From positions 9,176,001 to 9,240,000 of the forward strand of contig NC_088854.1 of NCBI RefSeq assembly GCF_963853765.1: a stretch of 64,000 nucleotides of DNA, in the 5' to 3' direction. The first letter of the stretch is position 1, and each line of letters starts with the position of its first letter. A program made the translations under genes and the position numbers. The stretch is from Magallana gigas. Taxonomy: Eukaryota. The notes beneath the pieces were generated by a model. That model worked only from the letters and a program-made list of their open reading frames with translations, had not been told where the DNA came from and did not search any database. This document shows positions 24,846 to 39,790 of the stretch, one piece after another.

Positions 24846-26299
24846 ATGGACATAGTGCTGGGCTATGCTGACAGGTTTGTCCTTACCCCATATGTTTACC
24901 CCTCTACATGGACAGAGGATGACCCTCTCCGACAGATTCTTAGTCTCCTGCTGATTACAAACATTGGGGGATATATCCTGTATTTCATGACGGCCACCAT
25001 CAACTATTTCACTATATTTGATTCCCGCTTGATGAAACACCCGTTATTTTTAAAGGTAAAATGATTGAAAATCATGTACATACATACATACATATATATT
25101 TCAAAAATGTATGACTCTGAATAATTTTCATTTTTTCGAGATCGTAGTTTAATAATTATAAAGTTTTCTAACATTCACTGCCAGTTTAAGAGATCGACCA
25201 GTTCAAAATTCCAGTATATCACTATTGACCAGCAACTCAATTGATCGACTGTTATTAATTACGTATCTAAATAGTTCAGACAAATGAAAAGACACACAGA
25301 ATAGACATAAATACTAAATACTTGATAAAAAGATTAAAGTTGTGTTGTATTTGGTTTCAGAACCAAGTGAGACTTGAGATATTATACACAGTTAAATCTG
25401 TGCCCCTTATGTCCATCCCCACTGTGGCCTTATTCTTCATTGAGGTCAGAGGTTACAGTAAATTGTATGATGCAGTGCCCAACTCCTTGAGTGGTAAGAA
25501 CTCTCTGTCATCAAAACTAAATATGTGTAGTAAATTAAATACATGCATTGTTCAGTTGCTTTAAAAGATGAGAAATTGAATTGCATTTCTACAATTTCTA
25601 GACAAAATAATTTGAAATAGAATTTTGAACTGTTTCTTATCTAAGGAAAGATTTTATAATGTAAATTGCTTTTTGATTTAATAGGTATAAAAATTGGTGT
25701 TGATGATTTATGTTAAAAGCAATAATATTTCTAGGGTTTTTTTTGAGTGAAGCGCAACAAGGTTTTGTTTTTCAGACTGGTGTAACATTCTGCTCAGCGT
25801 TGTGAGTTTCATCGTGTTCACTGATGCCTGTATTTACTGGATCCACCGCTTCCTTCACCACAAACTTATATACAAATACATCCACAAAGACCACCACCGC
25901 TGGAAGGTCCCCACACCATTCGCTTCCCATGCTTTTCACCCCCTAGATGGATTTCTCCAAAGTTGTCCGTACCATATCTATCCCTTTCTGTTTCCGCTAC
26001 ACAAATGGACCTACCTGTGTCTGTTTGTGTTTGTGAACATTTGGACGGTGTCTATCCATGACGGTGACTACAGAGTGCCCCTCCCCTTGGAACCGTTCAT
26101 CAATGGCTCCGCCCACCACACCGATCACCACCTGTTCTACAACTATAACTATGGCCAGTTTTTCACTCTGTGGGACAGAATTGGGGGCTCCTTCAGGCAC
26201 CCCAGTTCACTGGAGGGCTGTGGTCCCATTCAAGATATACTCAAGAAAGAGAACTCCAATGGGACAACATCTAAAGGCAAGTTGAAAAAAGAGGAATGA
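24846..26299 (+). CDS. SC5D: lathosterol oxidase / sterol-C5-desaturase, 288 aa
   Basis: Exons 24846-25055, 25361-25493 and 25776-26299. His boxes HRFLH, HKDHH and HTDHH. Near-colinear with human SC5D (TPYVYP, KHPxFLKNQV, [27 protein letters not shown]). Confidence 0.97.
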
Positions 26300-29008: not shown

Positions 29009-31245
29009 TTAATTGTCACATCGACATTTCTGGTTGATACACTTCCATTCTGTGGTGCAGGTATAGGAATGGCGGTCACAGTCTCCTTTATCCAAACAAT
29101 CTACAACAAATCAAGGCTATTGTAAAGGAATCCGGATAAAATATACAGAATCATCGCTACTTGAGCAACCGAGCACAGCGATGAATGTATACTTGATTGA
29201 TTGCATGTTGTGCTACGTTCCTTTCGAGTACATTGTTTTCAAATTCAGACGTCAGTTCCGGTGGCGCTCCAGGTATGTAATGGTTTTTATCGTGCCAGAA
29301 CCTCTGATAAGGTAAATGACTTATGGAGGGTAGACACCTAGTTATAGAAATCCAAATTTAGCCTAATATATGTATTTCGTCCATAACCGCAAAAGGCATC
29401 GTCGCAAACCATGGCCGATATGTACGATCCTCTCCCATCTGAGAGAGCGATACGGACCCCGAACCATGGCTTAAGACGATGCTCAGTTATAATTTGGGGT
29501 CTTTAGTTACAGAGAAAATCCACTTGACTAGCAATGAAAATGAAAACTTTTGTACTCAGATGAAGAGACACGTAGCATCGTCTTTGAAAGTAGGGGGGGG
29601 GGGAGTGGCACACTCAACCAAAAACTCTTGACAAGCATGAAAAAGCCTCTTCCCAAAATCCTCGAAAATCCGAAGGGGGGGGGGGTATAACGCAAACTTC
29701 TATATTACTGTTTATTTCCTTATATATTTTCAATTCAATTTTTTACATGGCCCCATAAATAAAGGAGGGGGGGGGGCAACTTCATGTTCATTCATTTCTT
29801 TATATGTAAATTTAAGAAAAAATCTTTCCTGCGCCAACAAGTTGGCGGGGGGGGGGGGGGGGGAGAGGCTGTGTGTTTGCCCCCCCCCCCCCCCCCCACC
29901 TCCTCATGCTACGTGCCTGATGTATAATCCTGATCACATGTGTATGCACTTTTAATTCTTGCTGACAAAGCCTGTTCTAGAACTTTGACTATTATTACTT
30001 AATCATGAAGCGTCAGGTCCAGATATCAATGTAGTCAAGTAGATATGTTGTAATATTGCTCCGTTTTTGGCGCACATGATCCAACTTTAGACAAAATTAA
30101 ACACCTGTGTTCTAAAAAGGGACATCTATTCTAGTAATAAGCCCGTCCTTTGGTATTTTCTCAGACAAAACTGTGGGATACTCATACAACTGCCTTTGGA
30201 GACATGCACTAAAAATAGTTTCCCGGAAATATGTTACCCAAAAAGGCAAACGTTTAAGACTAAACGAACCTTTAAAAAATGAAAAAAAGTATTACATTGT
30301 TTGATCTTGTAATACTAGACAATGTTTAATAGTTACAATAAGGTTTGATATATTCTTCAATTCCAAAGTATAGAATATTTCCATTGATAAGGCCAAAGAG
30401 AACATTGTCGATGGACTGACTGCCTTAATGCACGAGTGTTTATATCACATCGAAACCGATGGATTTGGATTTTAACATTGTCGACATTGTATTTTGCATA
30501 ATTTAATTGGTTATGGGCTCTAGATAAATAAGACATGATGAGAATGGTGGATTTGGAAACATCTATTATATTTTGTAAAATACTACTGCTGGCCGCGCCC
30601 TGAGGCCACGACTTCACAGTTTTAGACCCCTGGGTGAGGGTCACGAGGATGTCAATTTCGGTTTCCTTCTTCCAACATACAACATTTTGTCCCGATTTAA
30701 TTGCTATGTAGTATTCAAAAAGAAAATTTTCAAAAGTTACACAAACAACATAGACAATGTAATTTACTCACGAATATCGTAGGGTGGGAGCGAGCAGGTA
30801 CAGATGCCGTGGACACACTCCAGGTTGGTGTGGTGGTTACAGACCGTGTCTATACAGCCACCGACCACCGTACAGTCCTCGGCCCTCGGCGCACCTGTCA
30901 ATCATAAAACGGCGCGGTACGTAAAATATCTGCAGTTTTGTTCGGAAATAGATCTATTTCATTATTTCTTCTTATGTGGAAAGGTGTGTTGTAATAGTTT
31001 ACACGACGTCAATTTTACAAAAAGCCAACAAAACAATACCAATCTTTCGTTACAGTTTCAAATAACATATAATGTACCCCCCCCCCCCCCCCCCAAAAAA
31101 AAAACAAAAAACAACAACCCGTAAAAACCGCGAACTATACAAAGATGAAAAAGATATAATCAAGTAATTAAAATTTACAAACGAATCAGAATACTTTACC
31201 AATTAATGCAGCAACGACAAAAGTACACAAAAGGATAGTCTTCAT
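29009..31245 (-). CDS. cvSI-2-like secreted 12-Cys protease inhibitor A, 86 aa
   Basis: Exons 31245-31200, 30894-30772 and 29100-29009, phases 1 and 1. Protein MKTILLCTFVVAALIGAPRAEDCTVVGGCIDTVCNHHTNLECVHGICTCSLPPYDIHCLDKGDCDRHSYTCTTEWKCINQKCRCDN. The family name rests on size, the 12-Cys spacing and recall of oyster cvSI-2. Confidence 0.82.
29569..29915. mobile_element. poly-G/poly-C-rich MITE
   Basis: TIR CACGTAGCAT / ATGCTACGTG enclosing several G9-G17 runs and one long C run. Confidence 0.7.
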
Positions 31246-31544: not shown

Positions 31545-31828
31545 ATGGGAATGTTGAAAGCTATTCTTTTTGTCTCACTTTTCGGTATGTATACTATTAT
31601 TTTCAGTCATATTCCATGTCCATTGTTACTGTTAGTGAAACTTTTGGAAATGAGTGTCTTCTTTTGAAACTATACGCTCTTGATGATATAGATAATCTTA
31701 CTTATAATTAAACCAGCTTTTCGTTGACCGAATGATATTATTAAGTAGCAACATAACTGAAGGTAGCTCATCACACCCATTTATTACTATATTGAATCTT
31801 GATGAATACTAGTATATGTTGTTTTTAC

Positions 31829-31889
<61 letters not shown>

Positions 31890-33547
31890 ACGTGTATGGA
31901 CATTATTTATTTTGTGTAGGTCTCTTTGCGGGAGAATCTTGTGTCAGCAAGTATGACTGCATTGATGTTGGATGTGTCCATCACACAACGGTGACGTGTG
32001 ATAACAACCTGTGCACCTGTACACCGATAACCGATGTTTACAGTAAGTATGCAGCTTCAGATATGGTCGAGTTCACAGTGAATATACAGCATCAGATATG
32101 GCCGAGTTTACAGTGAATAAATATCATCAGATATGATCGAGTTTACAGTAAGTATACAGCATCAGATATGGTCGGTGTGTACAGTAAGTATACAGTATCA
32201 GATATGGCCGAGTTTACAGTAAGTATACAGGATAAGACACCGGTATTACCAATATATATAAATGATATACAGCATCAGATATATAAAATATTTACTTGTT
32301 TACCAATACCTGGGTGTGTCAATCAAACTACAGTGACTTGTAATACCAATCTGTGTATCTATTCACCGATAACCGATATTTACAGTGAGTATACAAGCTC
32401 AGATAAGTGTATTTGTATACCAGAGACCAAAATGTTTACTAAATCATTGACAGTATGCAAGCAACAGATAATTGTATGTTTATTCAAATAATAAGTGAAT
32501 ATAAAACATGTATACATATATGTAAATGGTTACATTGTGTATACACCAATAGATAAGCATGTAAAACATGTATGCCAATAATTCATGTTTACAGATATGT
32601 GTACCATGCAGATATGCGTATATTTACATGTTCACTGATTACAATGAATTGACCGCTATGTACATATATATTTATTTATAACTACACTGATAATTGTTGT
32701 TTACGGTGTATACAGCAACAGCTGTGTATATATTTACATGTAAACTGAAAATCCTAGTTAACAGTGAGTATACAACTACAACTACAATAATAGCCGGTGT
32801 ATATACAGCGACATCTTTATTGCTTAAAACACTAGTAACTGAAGTTTACTGTGAGTTTACAGCAATGAAATAACAAATGTATTTACATGTACATGTACGC
32901 CAAAACCCAATGTGTACTGTCATAATTCAGCAGTGAAAATATCTACGTTATACCAATGTTTACGGAATAAACTGGATGAACTTATATTTTCACCTGCATA
33001 CTATTTACGTTTACAGCACGTATACAACAAAGTACATATTTATTGTTTTATTAATTACTTATGGTATCACTTTTGTATAGGGGTTTTCACATAGTAATTT
33101 TACAGCAAACTATCCACAAATCTACACACCAAAAACATGATAGAGGTTTCCCACTGAAATATAGTATACAGCGACTGTGCCTTCAGCCCTTTGTGTATAC
33201 TAGTATATCAAATTGATGTTTTAGGTCTTAAAATGAATGTCTTCTAGATTTTGTTGCTCAGCCTACATGTAGATAAAAGGCTAAAGGCAAAGTTTTTATT
33301 GTAATAGAATAAAATATATTTGGGCCAATTTTGGATGGATTGTCAATTTTGTGAAGGTTCGCGGGGATGGATACAGAAATAAAGTATTTGCGTAAATACA
33401 TACAATTTGACTTAAAAGTTCTATGTAAATCTTAACAAAGTACCCTCTTATATTTTAGGATGCCTGACCCCATCTGATTGTAAAAGGCACATCCACGTGT
33501 GTTCTACTGCGTGGGAATGCATACAGCAGCAATGCCGCTGTAAATGA
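31545..33547 (+). CDS. cvSI-2-like secreted 12-Cys protease inhibitor B, 83 aa
   Basis: Exons 31545-31584, 31920-32042 and 33459-33547, phases 1 and 1; exon 2 is 123 nt as in paralog A. Protein MGMLKAILFVSLFGLFAGESCVSKYDCIDVGCVHHTTVTCDNNLCTCTPITDVYRCLTPSDCKRHIHVCSTAWECIQQQCRCK. Confidence 0.82.
31830..31886. repeat. (CT)n microsatellite
   Basis: Uninterrupted CT run just upstream of the exon 2 acceptor. Confidence 0.98.
32030..32230 (+). repeat. 35-bp minisatellite containing the exon-2 splice donor
   Basis: Six units with ACA|GT(A/G)A at GT positions 32043, 32078, 32113, 32148, 32184 and 32219. Confidence 0.92.
32291..32384 (+). pseudogene. degenerate duplicate of inhibitor-B exon 2
   Basis: FTCLPIPGCVNQTTVTCNTNLCIYSPITDIY versus YDCIDVGCVHHTTVTCDNNLCTCTPITDVY. 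Donor GTGAGT at 32385. No phase-compatible acceptor found. Confidence 0.75.
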
Positions 33548-35354: not shown

Positions 35355-35433
35355 TATATAAACTGCTCCGAGGTAGAGGGGCCCTCTACCCTCGCCTAAC
35401 CTCGACGGTCTAGACGTGCCTAACTTATCAAAG
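35355..35433 (+). promoter_or_regulatory. TATA box and non-coding first exon of the MCO-like gene
   Basis: TATATAAA at 35355-35362, donor AAAG|GTAAGG at 35434, and acceptor TTTAATAG immediately before ATG 35989. A GC hairpin (CGAGGTAGAGGG/CCCTCTACCCTCG) lies at the presumed start. Confidence 0.6.
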
Positions 35434-35988
35434 GTAAGGCGCATCTCACTATCTCATCAAATTGATTTGTTATAAAGACATTGATGAAGGACAAATAGAA
35501 AAAGCGTCAGGAAATAATTTAAGAAAATCTTCATCTCATTCGCCGATAAAAGCGGTGTTAAATTAATTGTATTGTAATGATGGTTGGCTTATTATTGCAA
35601 AAAGCAAATTATTGTTATCTGTGGAATCAGCATATTAAGGAAAATACATGAAAAAATACATGAAAATATCAGAAAAAAATTGATACTCTTTCCTCGTATT
35701 TCTTTAAGAAGGCGTATAATTTTTCTGATAAGTTTAAAGAAAATGGAGATCATAAACAATAAAAAGTAATAAATTATTATCCATTGAGATGTTGATGCAA
35801 ACTAAAGACCAAAGATATTATTCGTGTTATAAGAGATAGAAATATTTGCGTGGAATCAAACATACTTTAAACATTTTAAAGGTATATTGCGTATCAGTTA
35901 TAGCTATAGGAGGTTATGCTCCAAAACTAAACCCCTTGTAAAGGCACATTTCTGGCATCGGAACTGAATTAGCCTTATTTTTTAATAG

Positions 35989-38522
35989 ATGAGACTATCC
36001 TTAACCAGTTGTGTTGTATTAGTAATTCTTGGTGGAGCTATTGGGTTTCAATGCGACCAAAACGCAACGATATGCAGAACTTCTTTGGAAATCACCGAGA
36101 AACTAACCATGTTTCACGAAACTGAAAAAGCCGTCTACGCGAAAAATGGTTCTTTATATAGATATGACGTAACAGACATCAACCTTGCCAGACCCGTGAA
36201 CTCTGGTGAAGTTATCGCGGGAGATGGGTGGGAAAAGCAAAGAATGGTGGTTGTTGCCAATGGTACCTTACCAGGACCCCCTATCGTTGCCTACAAAGGT
36301 CAGGTTCTAGTAATTCACGTCAAGAACTCGCTCCCGTCTGATACCGTTTCTGTGCATTGGTACGGGATAGAGCAAAGAGGTACCCCTTATATGGACGGAG
36401 CAAGCTTCATCACCCAATGCCCCATCAATCCCGGCCAAACCTTCACGTACACATTCAGAGTTGATGAAAGTGGTACTTACTGGTACCATTCAAGCGCAGG
36501 CGCACAGAGAGGTAAGGGATTGTATGGGGCTTTGATAGTTCTGGATCGAGAGCCTCCGGCTAATTTAGATAAAGTCGATGGCGACTTTGTTCTACAGATA
36601 CAGGACTGGAATCATGATTACGATGCTGAACAAGGTTATATGCTTTCTAAAGACGGGGTTTATGAGAATAGGAGCCAAATCTTGACGACAAGATTGCCAA
36701 GAGGACGAAACAATTCTCTTTGGAACGCTCATTCGTCACTGATCAATGGAAACGGACGGTATTATGACCCTCAAACCGGGAAACACAACGAAGCACCTCT
36801 GCGGGATTTCAAGGTTCAGGAAGGAAAAAGCTACAGATTTCGCGTTATAAACGCAGCCTCTGTTTACTCATACAGAGTTTCAGTGGACGGGCACAATATA
36901 ACCATCATTGCCTCTGACGGCAAAATGGTCGTACCTGTCGAGGTAGAATCGTTTTGGGTTCATCCCGGAGAGAGATTCGACTTTTTATTAGAAGCCACTG
37001 CAAGAAGAGGAAAATACATGATTCGTGGAGTTGCAGAAGATGCCATCAACCCGATACCCGCCGAAGCTGTTTTGCATTACCTCGGAGCACGACCAGATGT
37101 TGATATAAACTCTGAAAGGTCTCAGTGTAACGAGACTGAGCCATGTACAGTGTTAAATTGTCCATTTCAATTTTATCTAAATAATCCAAAACTTCGATGT
37201 CTTGCCATTGAAGAATTAGTTTCTGATGTATCAAATGTAATTCCTGAGTACCAAGAAAGTCACTTCCAGGAGTTCTTTTTGAATTTTGCTATACCAGGGG
37301 CAGAAACCTATCCCGCCACCGTTAACAACGTCCAGTTTTTACAACCAACTGTTTCGGCCCTATCCCAGCCTAATGAAATCGTAAAACCCTGCTCTAAAAG
37401 TGGCTGTAAAGGGAACGAAACATGTACGTGTACAAATATCCTAGATGTGATTCATAACAACACCGTCCAATTCGTGTTCATGAACATGGGTAAGAGACAA
37501 ACATCGCACACTATCAGCATGCATGGACATTCCTTCTATGTTTTGAAAATGGGATTTGCTAATTATAACGAAACAACTGGCGAATATATTTCACAGAATG
37601 AAGATATAAAATGCGAAGGCAATGCTACCGAGGATGAAGCCTTTTGCAACAAGCCATCATGGACTAATCCCGAATGGCGCAACGGAAACGTCTCGGGTTT
37701 GAATCTTGTCGACCCCCCGCAGAAGGATACCGTTGTAGTCCCGTACGGTGGGTACGTTGTACTGCGTATCAAGGCCGACAACCCTGGGTTTTGGATGATA
37801 AAAAGTAATTCTCTCCCCGAATCACTGAACGGAATGGCCGTACTTATGAACGAATCTTTCTCGTATTTGCCAGATGTTCCTAAAAATTTCCCAACCTGCA
37901 GGAACTTTGAAGGCATAGATCCAGGTAAGAATGTACAAACTGTTTGACTGCTTTTTTAAATCGTGATTTGATTTTTGTAAAGTATAAGTTCAATTAATGA
38001 CCTGATTATTAATGTTGACAGATGTTCTTTGGACGACACCTGAACCTGTGACGACCACGCCCATACCTACAACAACCGAACCATCCAGTAAGTATATCAA
38101 CGCTCATTGTAAAAGAGTCAGCTGATCACATCCTTTTGTCATGTTGTAAATTTTGAATTTACTGAGACCCACCCAGTAAATTCAAAATTTACAACCTGGC
38201 ACATCGGGAAGTATTTGTTAGCGAAGTTTATTAAAGACAATATTAAATTAAAACGAAGTAATACTATTTCATTACCCTGAATTATACGAGAGTAGTACAC
38301 TTCGGAAGGTATTCTTTCCGCATAGTGATGGTTCCTTCTTAGAAGAGAGTAGGTAGGTATTATGTACATCATGCGTAGAATAAGGGTAAATATATATATT
38401 TTTTTATCTCCATAGCTTGCGTGACTTCCGGAGACTGCCATCGTCACACCTGGAATAACGACAACTGTCTACACAAGTGGGAGTGTATCAACGGAATCTG
38501 TCACTGCAATTCTAGTACATGA
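35989..38522 (+). CDS. laccase-like multicopper-oxidase homolog lacking most Cu ligands, with Thr/Pro stalk and C-terminal cvSI-2-type six-Cys module, 702 aa
   Basis: Exons 35989-37924, 38022-38087 and 38416-38522, phases 1 and 1, total 2109 nt. Signal peptide and three cupredoxin domains (NGTLPGPPI, TQCPINPG, YRFRVINA, DTVVVP.GG, ADNPG.W). Confidence 0.88.
38143..38195. repeat. perfect 22-bp-stem hairpin in the last intron of the MCO-like gene
   Basis: GTTGTAAATTTTGAATTTACTG-agacccacc-CAGTAAATTCAAAATTTACAAC. Confidence 0.9.
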
Positions 38523-39130
38523 GTCCTCACTGTTAAGTCGCCGTACTGTTACTGAATGCCGTATAAAGAGACTAGAAAGTGCCTTCTTTTTACCCTCATG
38601 TGTAATGCAATTGTAGCATTTTACAATCAACAGATTTGAACAATTATAAGATTAGGTTTTCGTTGTTTCTATTTCTAGAATTTATAATTATCACCGTGAC
38701 ATAAACAAATGCCGGATTTATACATTAAGTGAAACAATGTAGCATGTATACAGTAAAGATGACATTATCATATCAATTTGATTTATTTCTTATTCAAACT
38801 TGGTATATTCTCAATTATTGAATGATTGAAAAACTGAATGAAAATGTTAGGTCATCTCATGGTCCAGCTATTTTCCATGGCCTCTTTGTTCCATCTTATT
38901 TGAATGAGTTGTTTGAACCTTATTTCAACGTCAAAGTATTCAAGTTCAAAGATTTTGACAATCAAGTTCTATCTGTATACCATTATCTGTACAAGGAAGG
39001 AACCAAGAAGAATTTCTACATTTTGCTGACATCCAATAATAATGCTAATAAAATTAGAAAAAAAACTAGTTCAATTCACAAATGAATATTTATTTGCTCC
39101 ATGTTTAACGCCTTCCATGAAGTATACTTT

Positions 39131-39433
39131 TTATACTTTCTCCTGATACTCCCAGTCCGGATCCCCCGGGGGTCGGTATACTCTCTGTCCGTGGTCCCAG
39201 TCAGGGTCATTCGGGGGTCTGTATATTGACCTACTTTGTCGTGATCTGTCCTGTCGCTTCTGGGTGTGGATTTCTGTCCCATCAGGGGGAGGGAGGTACT
39301 GTTTTGTCTGTAAGCCATGGTGAGGGTGATAGCATGGAGGGTCATAGCAAATTATACCATCACGGGCGGGATAACCGAGGATTGTGGCGACCGTTAAAAC
39401 CAGAGCAGTCAATATGATGGAAGCTCTGCTCAT
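39131..39433 (-). CDS. small secreted prepropeptide-like protein with two YRPPxDPDW repeats, 100 aa
   Basis: Signal peptide MSRASIILTALVLTVATILG, then CYDPPC, a KR site and a 15-aa repeat. Coding-like GC content against an AT-rich background. TATA-like element near 39517-39530 on the minus strand. Confidence 0.75.
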   Translation of the reverse strand: MSRASIILTALVLTVATILGYPARDGIICYDPPCYHPHHGLQTKQYLPPPDGTEIHTQKRQDRSRQSRSIYRPPNDPDWDHGQRVYRPPGDPDWEYQEKV

Positions 39434-39790
39434 CTTATAGCCTGAAATATTTAAAATACGTACCGCTAAATCTCTCACAGCACTGGTCTCTACTCTCTAC
39501 ATTTCAACGTTGATACTATAGATATATAGCTATGATGCTTCGAATTCCTTTCCAACTGTCTGTCTCTGTCCTTTTTATGTCAGTACATATTGTATGTCCA
39601 ACTTGACTTTGAGAATCGATTTAGAGATTTTTATGGCAAAGTAAACAAGTTTAAATTTCATCAATTTTTTAAAATGTAAGTGTAAAGGTAAACCCTTCAC
39701 ATGATCAGTCCCGAGTTACAACTTATTTATACAACAATTTATATTCTCCCTCGTTTCACTTCTCCGAAAATAAAAAGAATTCGACCTTAT

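Follow-up and report, generated by a model that had tools for sequence, protein, structure and literature searches.

An oyster gene that joins a multicopper oxidase-like scaffold to an I84-like six-cysteine tail

Structure and transcript of the fusion gene

The window analysed here is a 64-kb stretch of the Magallana gigas genome (contig NC_088854.1, positions 9,176,001 to 9,240,000) without any N. On its plus strand it carries a gene, hereafter called the fusion gene, whose large coding exon has the domains of a multicopper oxidase (MCO) and whose last exon encodes a six-cysteine tail resembling the last exons of family I84 protease inhibitors. Two complete I84 genes lie 2-9 kb upstream of it as a divergent (head-to-head) pair. 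RNA contigs show that the fusion gene is expressed and has four exons. Its spliced product of 702 residues begins with a signal peptide, continues with three cupredoxin domains and a 22-residue Thr/Pro stalk, and ends in the six-Cys tail (a 30-residue module).

The first exon is non-coding (35402-35433, donor AG/GTAAGG) and at least 64 nt long, with only its 3′ end placed; the 64-nt loose ends that precede position 35987 in RNA contigs from sets X4, X5, and X7 have an exact and unique match at 35402-35431. The main coding exon (35989-37924), defined by Pfam matches and RNA contig coverage, encodes the signal peptide and the three cupredoxin domains. Left unspliced, this open reading frame (ORF) runs from 35989 to 37947 (652 amino acids). 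A strong donor, CAG/GTAAGA, follows directly after 37924, and the in-frame stop that ends the unspliced ORF (37945-37947) sits inside intron 1 (37925-38021; 97 nt, GT..AG, phase 1). Intron 1 is skipped in the X4, X5, and X7 contigs and in eight raw reads of set X21. The stalk exon that comes next (38022-38087; 66 nt, phase 1 to phase 1) encodes D-VLWTTPEPVTTTPIPTTTEPS and ends A/GTAAGT. It is separated by intron 2 (38088-38415; 328 nt, GTAAGT..AG, phase 1) from the terminal coding exon (38416-38522, entered in phase 1), which is preceded by a pyrimidine tract and AG and reads T-C-VTSGD-C-HRHTWNNDN-C-LHKWE-C-INGI-C-H-C-NSST-stop. The 3′ untranslated region extends to about 38716-39065.

RNA contig X5 record 8 (2718 nt) runs unbroken through 35987-37921, 38019-38087, and 38416-39065, and X7 record 15 did the same; both records jump from 38087 to 38416. 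Junction 1 (37921/4 to 38019/22) was also present in an X4 contig, from a third study, and in raw poly-A reads (X21), where eight reads with seven different start points crossed it with GT..AG ends. All X21 first mates map to the minus strand, which fits plus-strand RNA in a stranded library. Junction 2 was read from the alignment of contig pieces, and the joint fell at a low-complexity stretch (38386-38414). Read depth inside intron 2 (38174-38407) was zero in X4 and X5. Because contigs cross both junctions and depth in intron 2 is zero, the tail exon at 38416-38522 is not an independent small gene. No transcript form ending at the unspliced stop at 37947 was seen among the RNA contigs and reads inspected.

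An earlier model-made reading of this DNA, the original prediction, had proposed both junctions (37924 to 38022 and 38087 to 38416) and had argued that the unspliced stop at 37947 hides the tail. Both junctions are present in RNA contigs from two studies, and the stop indeed lies in spliced-out intron 1. Of the two outcomes that it had named as contrary, transcripts ending at 37947 and a separate small gene at 38416-38522, neither was seen in the RNA data.

Two further features lie within or close to the fusion gene. Intron 2 contains an inverted repeat (38137-38201) with 28-nt arms that are 93% complementary and a 9-nt loop. It collects RNA contigs and reads whose loose ends run into unrelated sequence, as for a dispersed element transcribed elsewhere that resembles a miniature inverted-repeat transposable element (MITE). 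Just downstream of the 3′ end of the fusion gene, a small minus-strand ORF (39131-39478) has a signal-peptide-like start and repeated YRPPxDPDW units.

The tail and the neighbouring I84 inhibitors

Members of family I84 have been described as having a signal peptide and about 70 mature residues with 12 Cys arranged 6+6, a C-T-C motif closing module A; their genes have three exons and two phase-1 introns, with exon 3 encoding Cys 7-12 (PMC9198434). The tail of the fusion gene contains only the second six of these Cys, without module A, and is part of a 702-residue protein. Like Cys 7-12 of the family, its six Cys are encoded in a single last exon after a phase-1 intron. In a six-frame scan the window yielded five six-Cys exons, where shuffles gave 0.01; these exons belong to two small genes and to the MCO tail. 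The intron in front of the last six-Cys exon is in phase 1 in each of the three genes and stops two bases short of the first Cys codon.

Profile comparison placed the tail in the second half of the inhibitor. A profile of four tails aligned with a profile of five I84 proteins (hhalign, 98.6%, E 7.9e-16) over the last 29 columns, that is, over module B only. The window tail matched P0121, a Saccostrea echinata protein named 'serine protease inhibitor Cvsi-2-like' by NCBI, with a BLASTP E value of 1e-7 in module B and 0.10 in module A. A phmmer search with P0121 over 1.84 billion representative proteins returned the S. echinata MCO fusion (E 1.9e-6). Two other proteins from this exhaustive search, P0127 and P0128, were set aside as low-complexity repeat proteins that are not I84 relatives. 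Five tails and seven free modules (one from Pinctada) all have the D, R, and H of D-C-x-R-H and every Cys except the third, which, like the Trp, is almost invariant. The final motif is C-H-C in four of the five tails and C-V-C in that of Crassostrea virginica, while the free modules compared have C-R-C. The statements of the original prediction on the tail sequence, on the common D-C-x-R-H, W-x-C-I, and C-x-C, and on the common position and phase of the intron all hold, as does the relationship that it drew between the tail and the last exons of the cvSI-type neighbours. We conclude from these alignments that the tail and module B (the exon-3 half) of I84 (cvSI-type) inhibitors are homologous.

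The published Cys spacing of module B is C-X5-7-C-X3-6-C-X5-8-C-X4-C-X-C (PMC9198434). In the window tail it is X5, X9, X5, X4, X1, so that loop 2 exceeds this range; loop 2 is X6, within the range, in Ostrea edulis and S. echinata, X7 in C. virginica, and X8 in the sister species of M. gigas. No Pfam model covers the six-Cys exons, for which only sub-threshold matches to EB, Toxin_2, and Nodulin_late were returned. A word-indexed search with stalk and tail (P0010 residues 640-700) among proteins of 385-1225 residues returned the query alone from only 11 candidates, a result that is not evidence of absence. The stalk itself is Thr/Pro-rich. Its TTTPIPTTTEP is invariant in five oyster lineages, and the Thr codons differ by synonymous changes among the four lineages compared at the DNA level.

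Structure prediction was applied to both kinds of protein. The AlphaFold2 (AF2) model of the tail alone, from a four-sequence alignment, had a mean predicted local distance difference test score (pLDDT) of 76.6, with residues 4-11 forming a helix and residues 20-24 and 27-31 a hairpin. The model of the whole S. echinata inhibitor scored 66.8 and had a helix plus hairpin in each module. The predicted helix and hairpin and the even number of Cys would fit an autonomous module. Weak matches to scorpion K-channel toxins and plant defensins recurred, with a template modelling (TM) score of about 0.6 over 30 residues; all were sub-threshold (Pfam Toxin_2, E 0.017; scorpine in PDB, E 0.64; Foldseek, E of at least 1.8), and we treat these matches as a lead only. 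The cysteine-stabilised alpha-beta fold of scorpion toxins and defensins, in which C-x3-C in the helix pairs with C-x-C in the strand, is not supported for the tail: the matches stay below threshold, and the spacing between the second and third Cys is 6-9 and not 3.

The two neighbouring inhibitor genes each have three exons separated by phase-1 introns. The plus-strand gene (31545-33547) has a signal exon at 31545-31584, module A at 31920-32042, and module B plus stop at 33459-33547. The minus-strand gene (31245-29009) has corresponding exons at 31245-31200, 30894-30772 (module A), and 29100-29009 (module B plus stop). The last-exon six-Cys stretches read C-LDKGD-C-DRHSYT-C-TTEWK-C-INQK-C-R-C (33461-33541, plus strand) and C-LTPSD-C-KRHIHV-C-STAWE-C-IQQQ-C-R-C (29098-29018, minus strand). 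Both had been quoted correctly in the original prediction, which had omitted that the second lies on the minus strand. Each gene has the signal peptide, the 12 Cys with C-T-C in module A, the three exons, the two phase-1 introns, and the clustered arrangement of I84 genes. The plus-strand module-A exon is 81% identical to its counterpart in P0121. The minus-strand product equals P0133 (M. gigas, UniProt K1Q976) apart from the choice of start codon, and differs by one residue, again besides the start-codon choice, from P0130, a Crassostrea angulata 'serine protease inhibitor Cvsi-2-like'. The match to K1Q976 by itself makes M. gigas the likeliest source of the window. Their earlier identification as cvSI-2-like inhibitors is thus borne out, both by the features given in PMC9198434 and by orthologues that carry this name at NCBI.

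Several side observations concern these genes and their surroundings. In the plus-strand inhibitor gene, the intron after exon 2 opens with 5.7 copies of a 35-bp tandem repeat (32036-32237), whose unit includes the last bases of the exon plus the GTAAGT donor, creating several decoy donors. Behind it, at about 32310-32385, the second half of module A is present once more in degenerate form, C-VNQTTVT-C-NTNL-C-I-Y-SPITD, with the last Cys lost; this copy is apparently a pseudo-exon. Intronic sequence of the minus-strand gene (29590-29910 and 31080-31110) has several poly-G/poly-C runs of 10-20 nt. Farther upstream, a plus-strand ORF (25802-26299) contains the histidine boxes HRFLHH, HKDHH, and HHTDHH, typical of membrane enzymes of the fatty-acid hydroxylase/sterol desaturase type, and is probably an exon of a neighbouring gene.

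Orthologues, age, and copper ligands

The MCO-stalk-tail architecture is common to M. gigas, its sister species, C. virginica, S. echinata, and O. edulis. Identity to the window protein is 91% for the orthologue in the sister species (L003, exons read from genomic DNA), 66% for that of C. virginica (LOC111127532, formerly 'laccase-4-like'), 64% for that of O. edulis (LOC130051743), and 58% for that of S. echinata (LOC133192695). The public models of the last three already give the spliced MCO-stalk-tail product, labelled 'uncharacterized protein' or 'laccase-4-like'; the I84 module and the loss of copper ligands go unmentioned. A maximum-likelihood tree of 39 MCOs groups the five tail-bearing proteins in a single clade (support 100/100, long stem of 0.51) nested among tail-less oyster MCOs, and those that surround it are membrane-anchored. 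Compared with the sister species, at a synonymous divergence (dS) of 0.24, the body has a ratio of nonsynonymous to synonymous substitution (dN/dS) of 0.19, and stalk plus tail have one of 0.11. The fusion gene is under purifying selection. As a separate observation on the tail-less clade, the Saccostrea cucullata MCO P0013 (LOC134258593 isoform X2) has a C-terminus that looks like the beginning of a C-type lectin domain (CPADW...NHCY). Exchange of the C-terminal exon downstream of the phase-1 intron may therefore have happened repeatedly in oyster MCOs.

Gene order at the locus, minus-strand I84 gene, plus-strand I84 gene, and plus-strand MCO-tail gene, is kept in S. echinata and C. virginica, and in the sister species (L003) the last exon of the plus-strand inhibitor likewise lies upstream of the fusion gene. 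A downstream Arf/Roc gene is common to O. edulis and C. virginica. The synteny that the original prediction had proposed to check in related oysters was therefore found in three species and not within 10 kb upstream in O. edulis, a case weighed below. The tail exon with its flanks showed no significant similarity to either inhibitor exon-3 region in DNA comparison, and a recent duplication of an inhibitor exon was rejected on this ground. Since the architecture is common to all these lineages and no nucleotide similarity is left, the capture predates the split of Magallana, Crassostrea, Saccostrea, and Ostrea. These oyster genera separated roughly 100 million years ago.

The main exon matches Cu-oxidase_3 (PF07732), Cu-oxidase (PF00394), and Cu-oxidase_2 (PF07731) with E values of 2e-38, 1e-31, and 3e-26, far above the Pfam cut-off, so that the body has the three cupredoxin domains of a three-domain MCO. 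PMC4203857 states that ten His and one Cys coordinate the four coppers needed for oxidase activity. This set is incomplete in the window protein. The 11 ligand positions were read off an alignment that combines the window protein and its 120 best homologues; the expected string is HHHHHHHHCHH. In M. gigas and the sister species the string is HYHSHSHKSNE, with seven ligands lost; the motifs of the window protein read HWY, HSS, H..S.H, and KSN...E, and 4 of the 11 ligands are kept. The type 1 (T1) Cys and both flanking His are replaced by K-S-N, the second T1 His is replaced by E, and one His is gone from each of the other three ligand motifs. S. echinata has also lost seven (HHRQVHHAYQL), mostly others than those lost in the window protein. 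The orthologues of O. edulis (HCQ in the last motif) and C. virginica (Asp in place of the final His) have each lost one and keep 10 of 11.

Among the 120 best homologues, all 107 complete tail-less proteins have 11 of 11 ligands, and two more sequences are truncated fragments. Every tail-bearing protein, by comparison, has lost between one and seven, and the substitutions differ between the two main branches. Across species, ligand loss tracks the presence of the tail. Gln is common to Ostrea and Saccostrea and Asp/Glu to Crassostrea and Magallana, which suggests one first ligand loss per main branch; further decay would have followed later in Saccostrea and Magallana. The alignment shows the window protein to be without the residues for type 1 copper and for most of the trinuclear cluster. 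Judged by these residues, the fusion protein of M. gigas and of S. echinata cannot be a laccase.

Origin and possible function of the fusion

The explanation that we prefer covers the structure of the fusion gene, its origin by exon capture, and a carrier-type function, and we put its overall probability at about 0.75. Its structural and evolutionary account, taken by itself, is held with high confidence. The comparisons above support a true chimera of an MCO scaffold and the six-Cys module of an I84 last exon, as originally predicted, and exon shuffling through the matching phase-1 introns would be the natural mechanism. Very probably, an MCO gene in the ancestor of the living Ostreidae captured the terminal exon of an adjacent I84 gene, and its copper sites then decayed. 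According to this scenario, a copy of the I84 exon would have landed downstream of an MCO gene whose large exon already had a phase-1 intron, with C-terminal stalk and anchor exons behind it. I84 exon 3 would have been able to replace the membrane-anchor exon because it combines phase-1 entry with its own stop and 3′ end, and through the exchange an anchored oxidase would have become soluble and gained a new head. After the capture, the copper sites would have become dispensable and decayed at least twice independently. Outside the Cys, the tail is identical to the two inhibitors at 6-11 of 21 positions, which favours the plus-strand type only slightly as the donor.

With regard to function, the signal peptide and the lack of an anchor show that the fusion protein is, by its sequence, a secreted one, and its many N-x-S/T sites together with the Thr/Pro stalk mean that it is probably heavily glycosylated. 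We tentatively suggest, as a possibility well short of even odds, that it is a non-oxidising glycosylated carrier displaying an I84 half-module that binds protease targets. The cupredoxin body would serve as a large glycosylated carrier or as a second binding surface, without oxidation in M. gigas, and the O-glycosylated stalk would hold the half-module away from it. The half-module might bind the same targets as module B of the free inhibitors, namely subtilisin-type serine proteases of parasites or microbes, and the fusion gene would act beside the two free inhibitors in defence outside the cell. The subtilisin-type serine proteases that I84 peptides inhibit include the virulence protease of Perkinsus (PMC9198434).

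Several points weigh against this reading. The AF2 models are of medium confidence, and searches with the inhibitor and tail models (Foldseek at E <= 0.001, VIA-align wide at Z >= 2) and a PDB sequence search gave no structural relative. Loop 2 of the tail varies in length among species (6, 7, 8, or 9 residues), and the C. virginica tail lacks both the conserved Trp and the His of C-H-C. In O. edulis (L001, 1-10000), neither a six-Cys exon nor a called gene lies within 10 kb upstream of the fusion gene, so linkage is not universal; the I84 pair of this species is either farther away or lost. Some copper chemistry might persist in the orthologues of O. edulis and C. virginica, which keep 10 of 11 ligands. 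I84 module B by itself is not known to bind or inhibit a protease. The two-module nature of I84 is speculation in PMC9198434.

Nearly as plausible as the tentative carrier proposal, though we still consider it unlikely, is a tail without any protease role. According to this alternative, replacement of the anchor made the protein soluble, and the tail is a disulfide-locked cap or a knob for attachment or oligomerisation, while activity (binding of phenolics, metals, or matrix/mucus components) resides in the ligand-poor cupredoxin body. The variable loop 2, the C. virginica tail with C-V-C and no Trp, and the presence of only half an inhibitor would all agree with it, as would the purifying selection on the body. 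Swapping at this position may also be opportunistic, given that other oyster MCO paralogues end in transmembrane anchors or, in P0013, in the lectin-like start. Against it, stalk plus tail are more constrained than the body; the non-Cys marks of I84 module B (D-C-x-R-H and, mostly, T and W) are kept in the tails of long-separated lineages; and loss of catalysis tracks gain of the tail.

The original prediction had the fusion arise in the reverse direction, by insertion of an MCO coding block into a third inhibitor gene copy. In keeping with that direction, the locus holds a cluster of I84 genes, and the plus-strand inhibitor and the tail exon follow each other on one strand. The remainder of the gene is MCO-like. 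Between 33547 and 38416, a six-frame scan gave neither a signal-peptide exon nor a module-A exon of the inhibitor type. The signal peptide and N-terminus of the window protein can be aligned from end to end with MCO paralogues (100% query cover). At other loci, tail-less paralogues likewise have this large exon with a phase-1 intron behind it: in O. edulis LOC125655475 the large exon ends CRNFGNY-G at a phase-1 intron in the same place as in the window gene, and in C. virginica LOC111108406 the phase-1 intron lies a few residues later than in LOC125655475. In both, a hydrophobic anchor exon follows the intron. The stalk, too, is similar to Thr/Pro stretches found ahead of the anchors in other mollusc MCOs. 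Because the 5′ part is MCO-type, the paralogues have the phase-1 intron, and inhibitor signal and module-A exons are missing, we identify the MCO gene as the recipient of a copy of I84 exon 3, and the earlier direction now appears improbable.

We regard it as more improbable still that the protein is a working multicopper oxidase whose tail modifies only its location. The MCO fold signature is intact in the Pfam search, and the O. edulis and C. virginica orthologues are one ligand short of a full set, both of which would suit an oxidase. In M. gigas, the T1 site reads K-S-N plus E and each remaining motif has lost one His, against a requirement, in PMC4203857, for all eleven ligands. An artefact (chimeric assembly, read-through, or an independent small gene at 38416-38522), in favour of which nothing was found, has next to no probability, given spliced contigs in several independent RNA studies, raw reads with GT..AG ends, an identical exon order in the genomes of five species, and the same product in NCBI models for three.

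Three known systems come closest to the fusion protein. The first comprises the I84 inhibitors (cvSI-1, -2, and -3 of C. virginica and scSI-1 to -14 of Sinonovacula; PMC9198434). The tail is like them in the order of its Cys, in D-C-x-R-H, W-x-C, and the final C-x-C, in its single exon behind a phase-1 intron before the first Cys, in being secreted, and in its location in an I84 cluster. It differs in that they are free 8-kDa peptides with 12 Cys, whereas the tail is half a unit on a 650-residue protein; in addition, the window tail has a 3-residue insertion in loop 2, and tails mostly have C-H-C where free modules have C-R-C. The second comprises the anchored laccase-like MCOs of molluscs (such as C. 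virginica LOC111108406 and O. edulis LOC125655475), which have the same three Pfam domains, 49-56% identity, the same large coding exon, the phase-1 intron, and an N-terminal signal peptide. These proteins have 11 ligands and a hydrophobic anchor; the fusion clade has stalk and I84 module instead and has lost 1 to 7 ligands.

The third is insect MCORP, which by analogy is the nearest functional counterpart of the fusion body. We know of no inhibitor-type module on it, and its ligand loss is likely to be independent of the oyster fusion. As portrayed in PMC4203857, MCORP is a conserved MCO-fold protein that, like the fusion body, is without many copper ligands, and it is essential for viability, longevity, and ovary development; it provides a precedent for a pseudo-MCO that is not an oxidase. 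A literature search returned nothing linking I84 with laccases and nothing on the fusion, with the results for oyster laccase swamped by oyster-mushroom papers.

PMC9198434 portrays I84 inhibitors only as free 8-kDa two-module peptides of molluscs. They matter for resistance to Perkinsus (Dermo disease). A conserved natural protein with module B only offers a direct route to asking which half of an I84 inhibitor binds. The fusion gene is also a clean and datable case of exon shuffling between neighbouring genes through matching phase-1 introns, and the repeated loss of metal ligands under purifying selection ties the birth of a pseudo-enzyme to the gain of a specific domain. For oyster genomics, labels such as 'laccase-4-like' can be corrected. 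A more speculative extension, which we hold to be doubtful, is that gain of the half-module switched an oyster laccase from enzyme to binder, and that this secreted pseudo-laccase, a glycosylated carrier or trap with a protease-binding head, and the two free inhibitors form a conserved three-gene defence locus. If true, such a switch would be a natural experiment showing I84 module B to be an autonomous functional unit.

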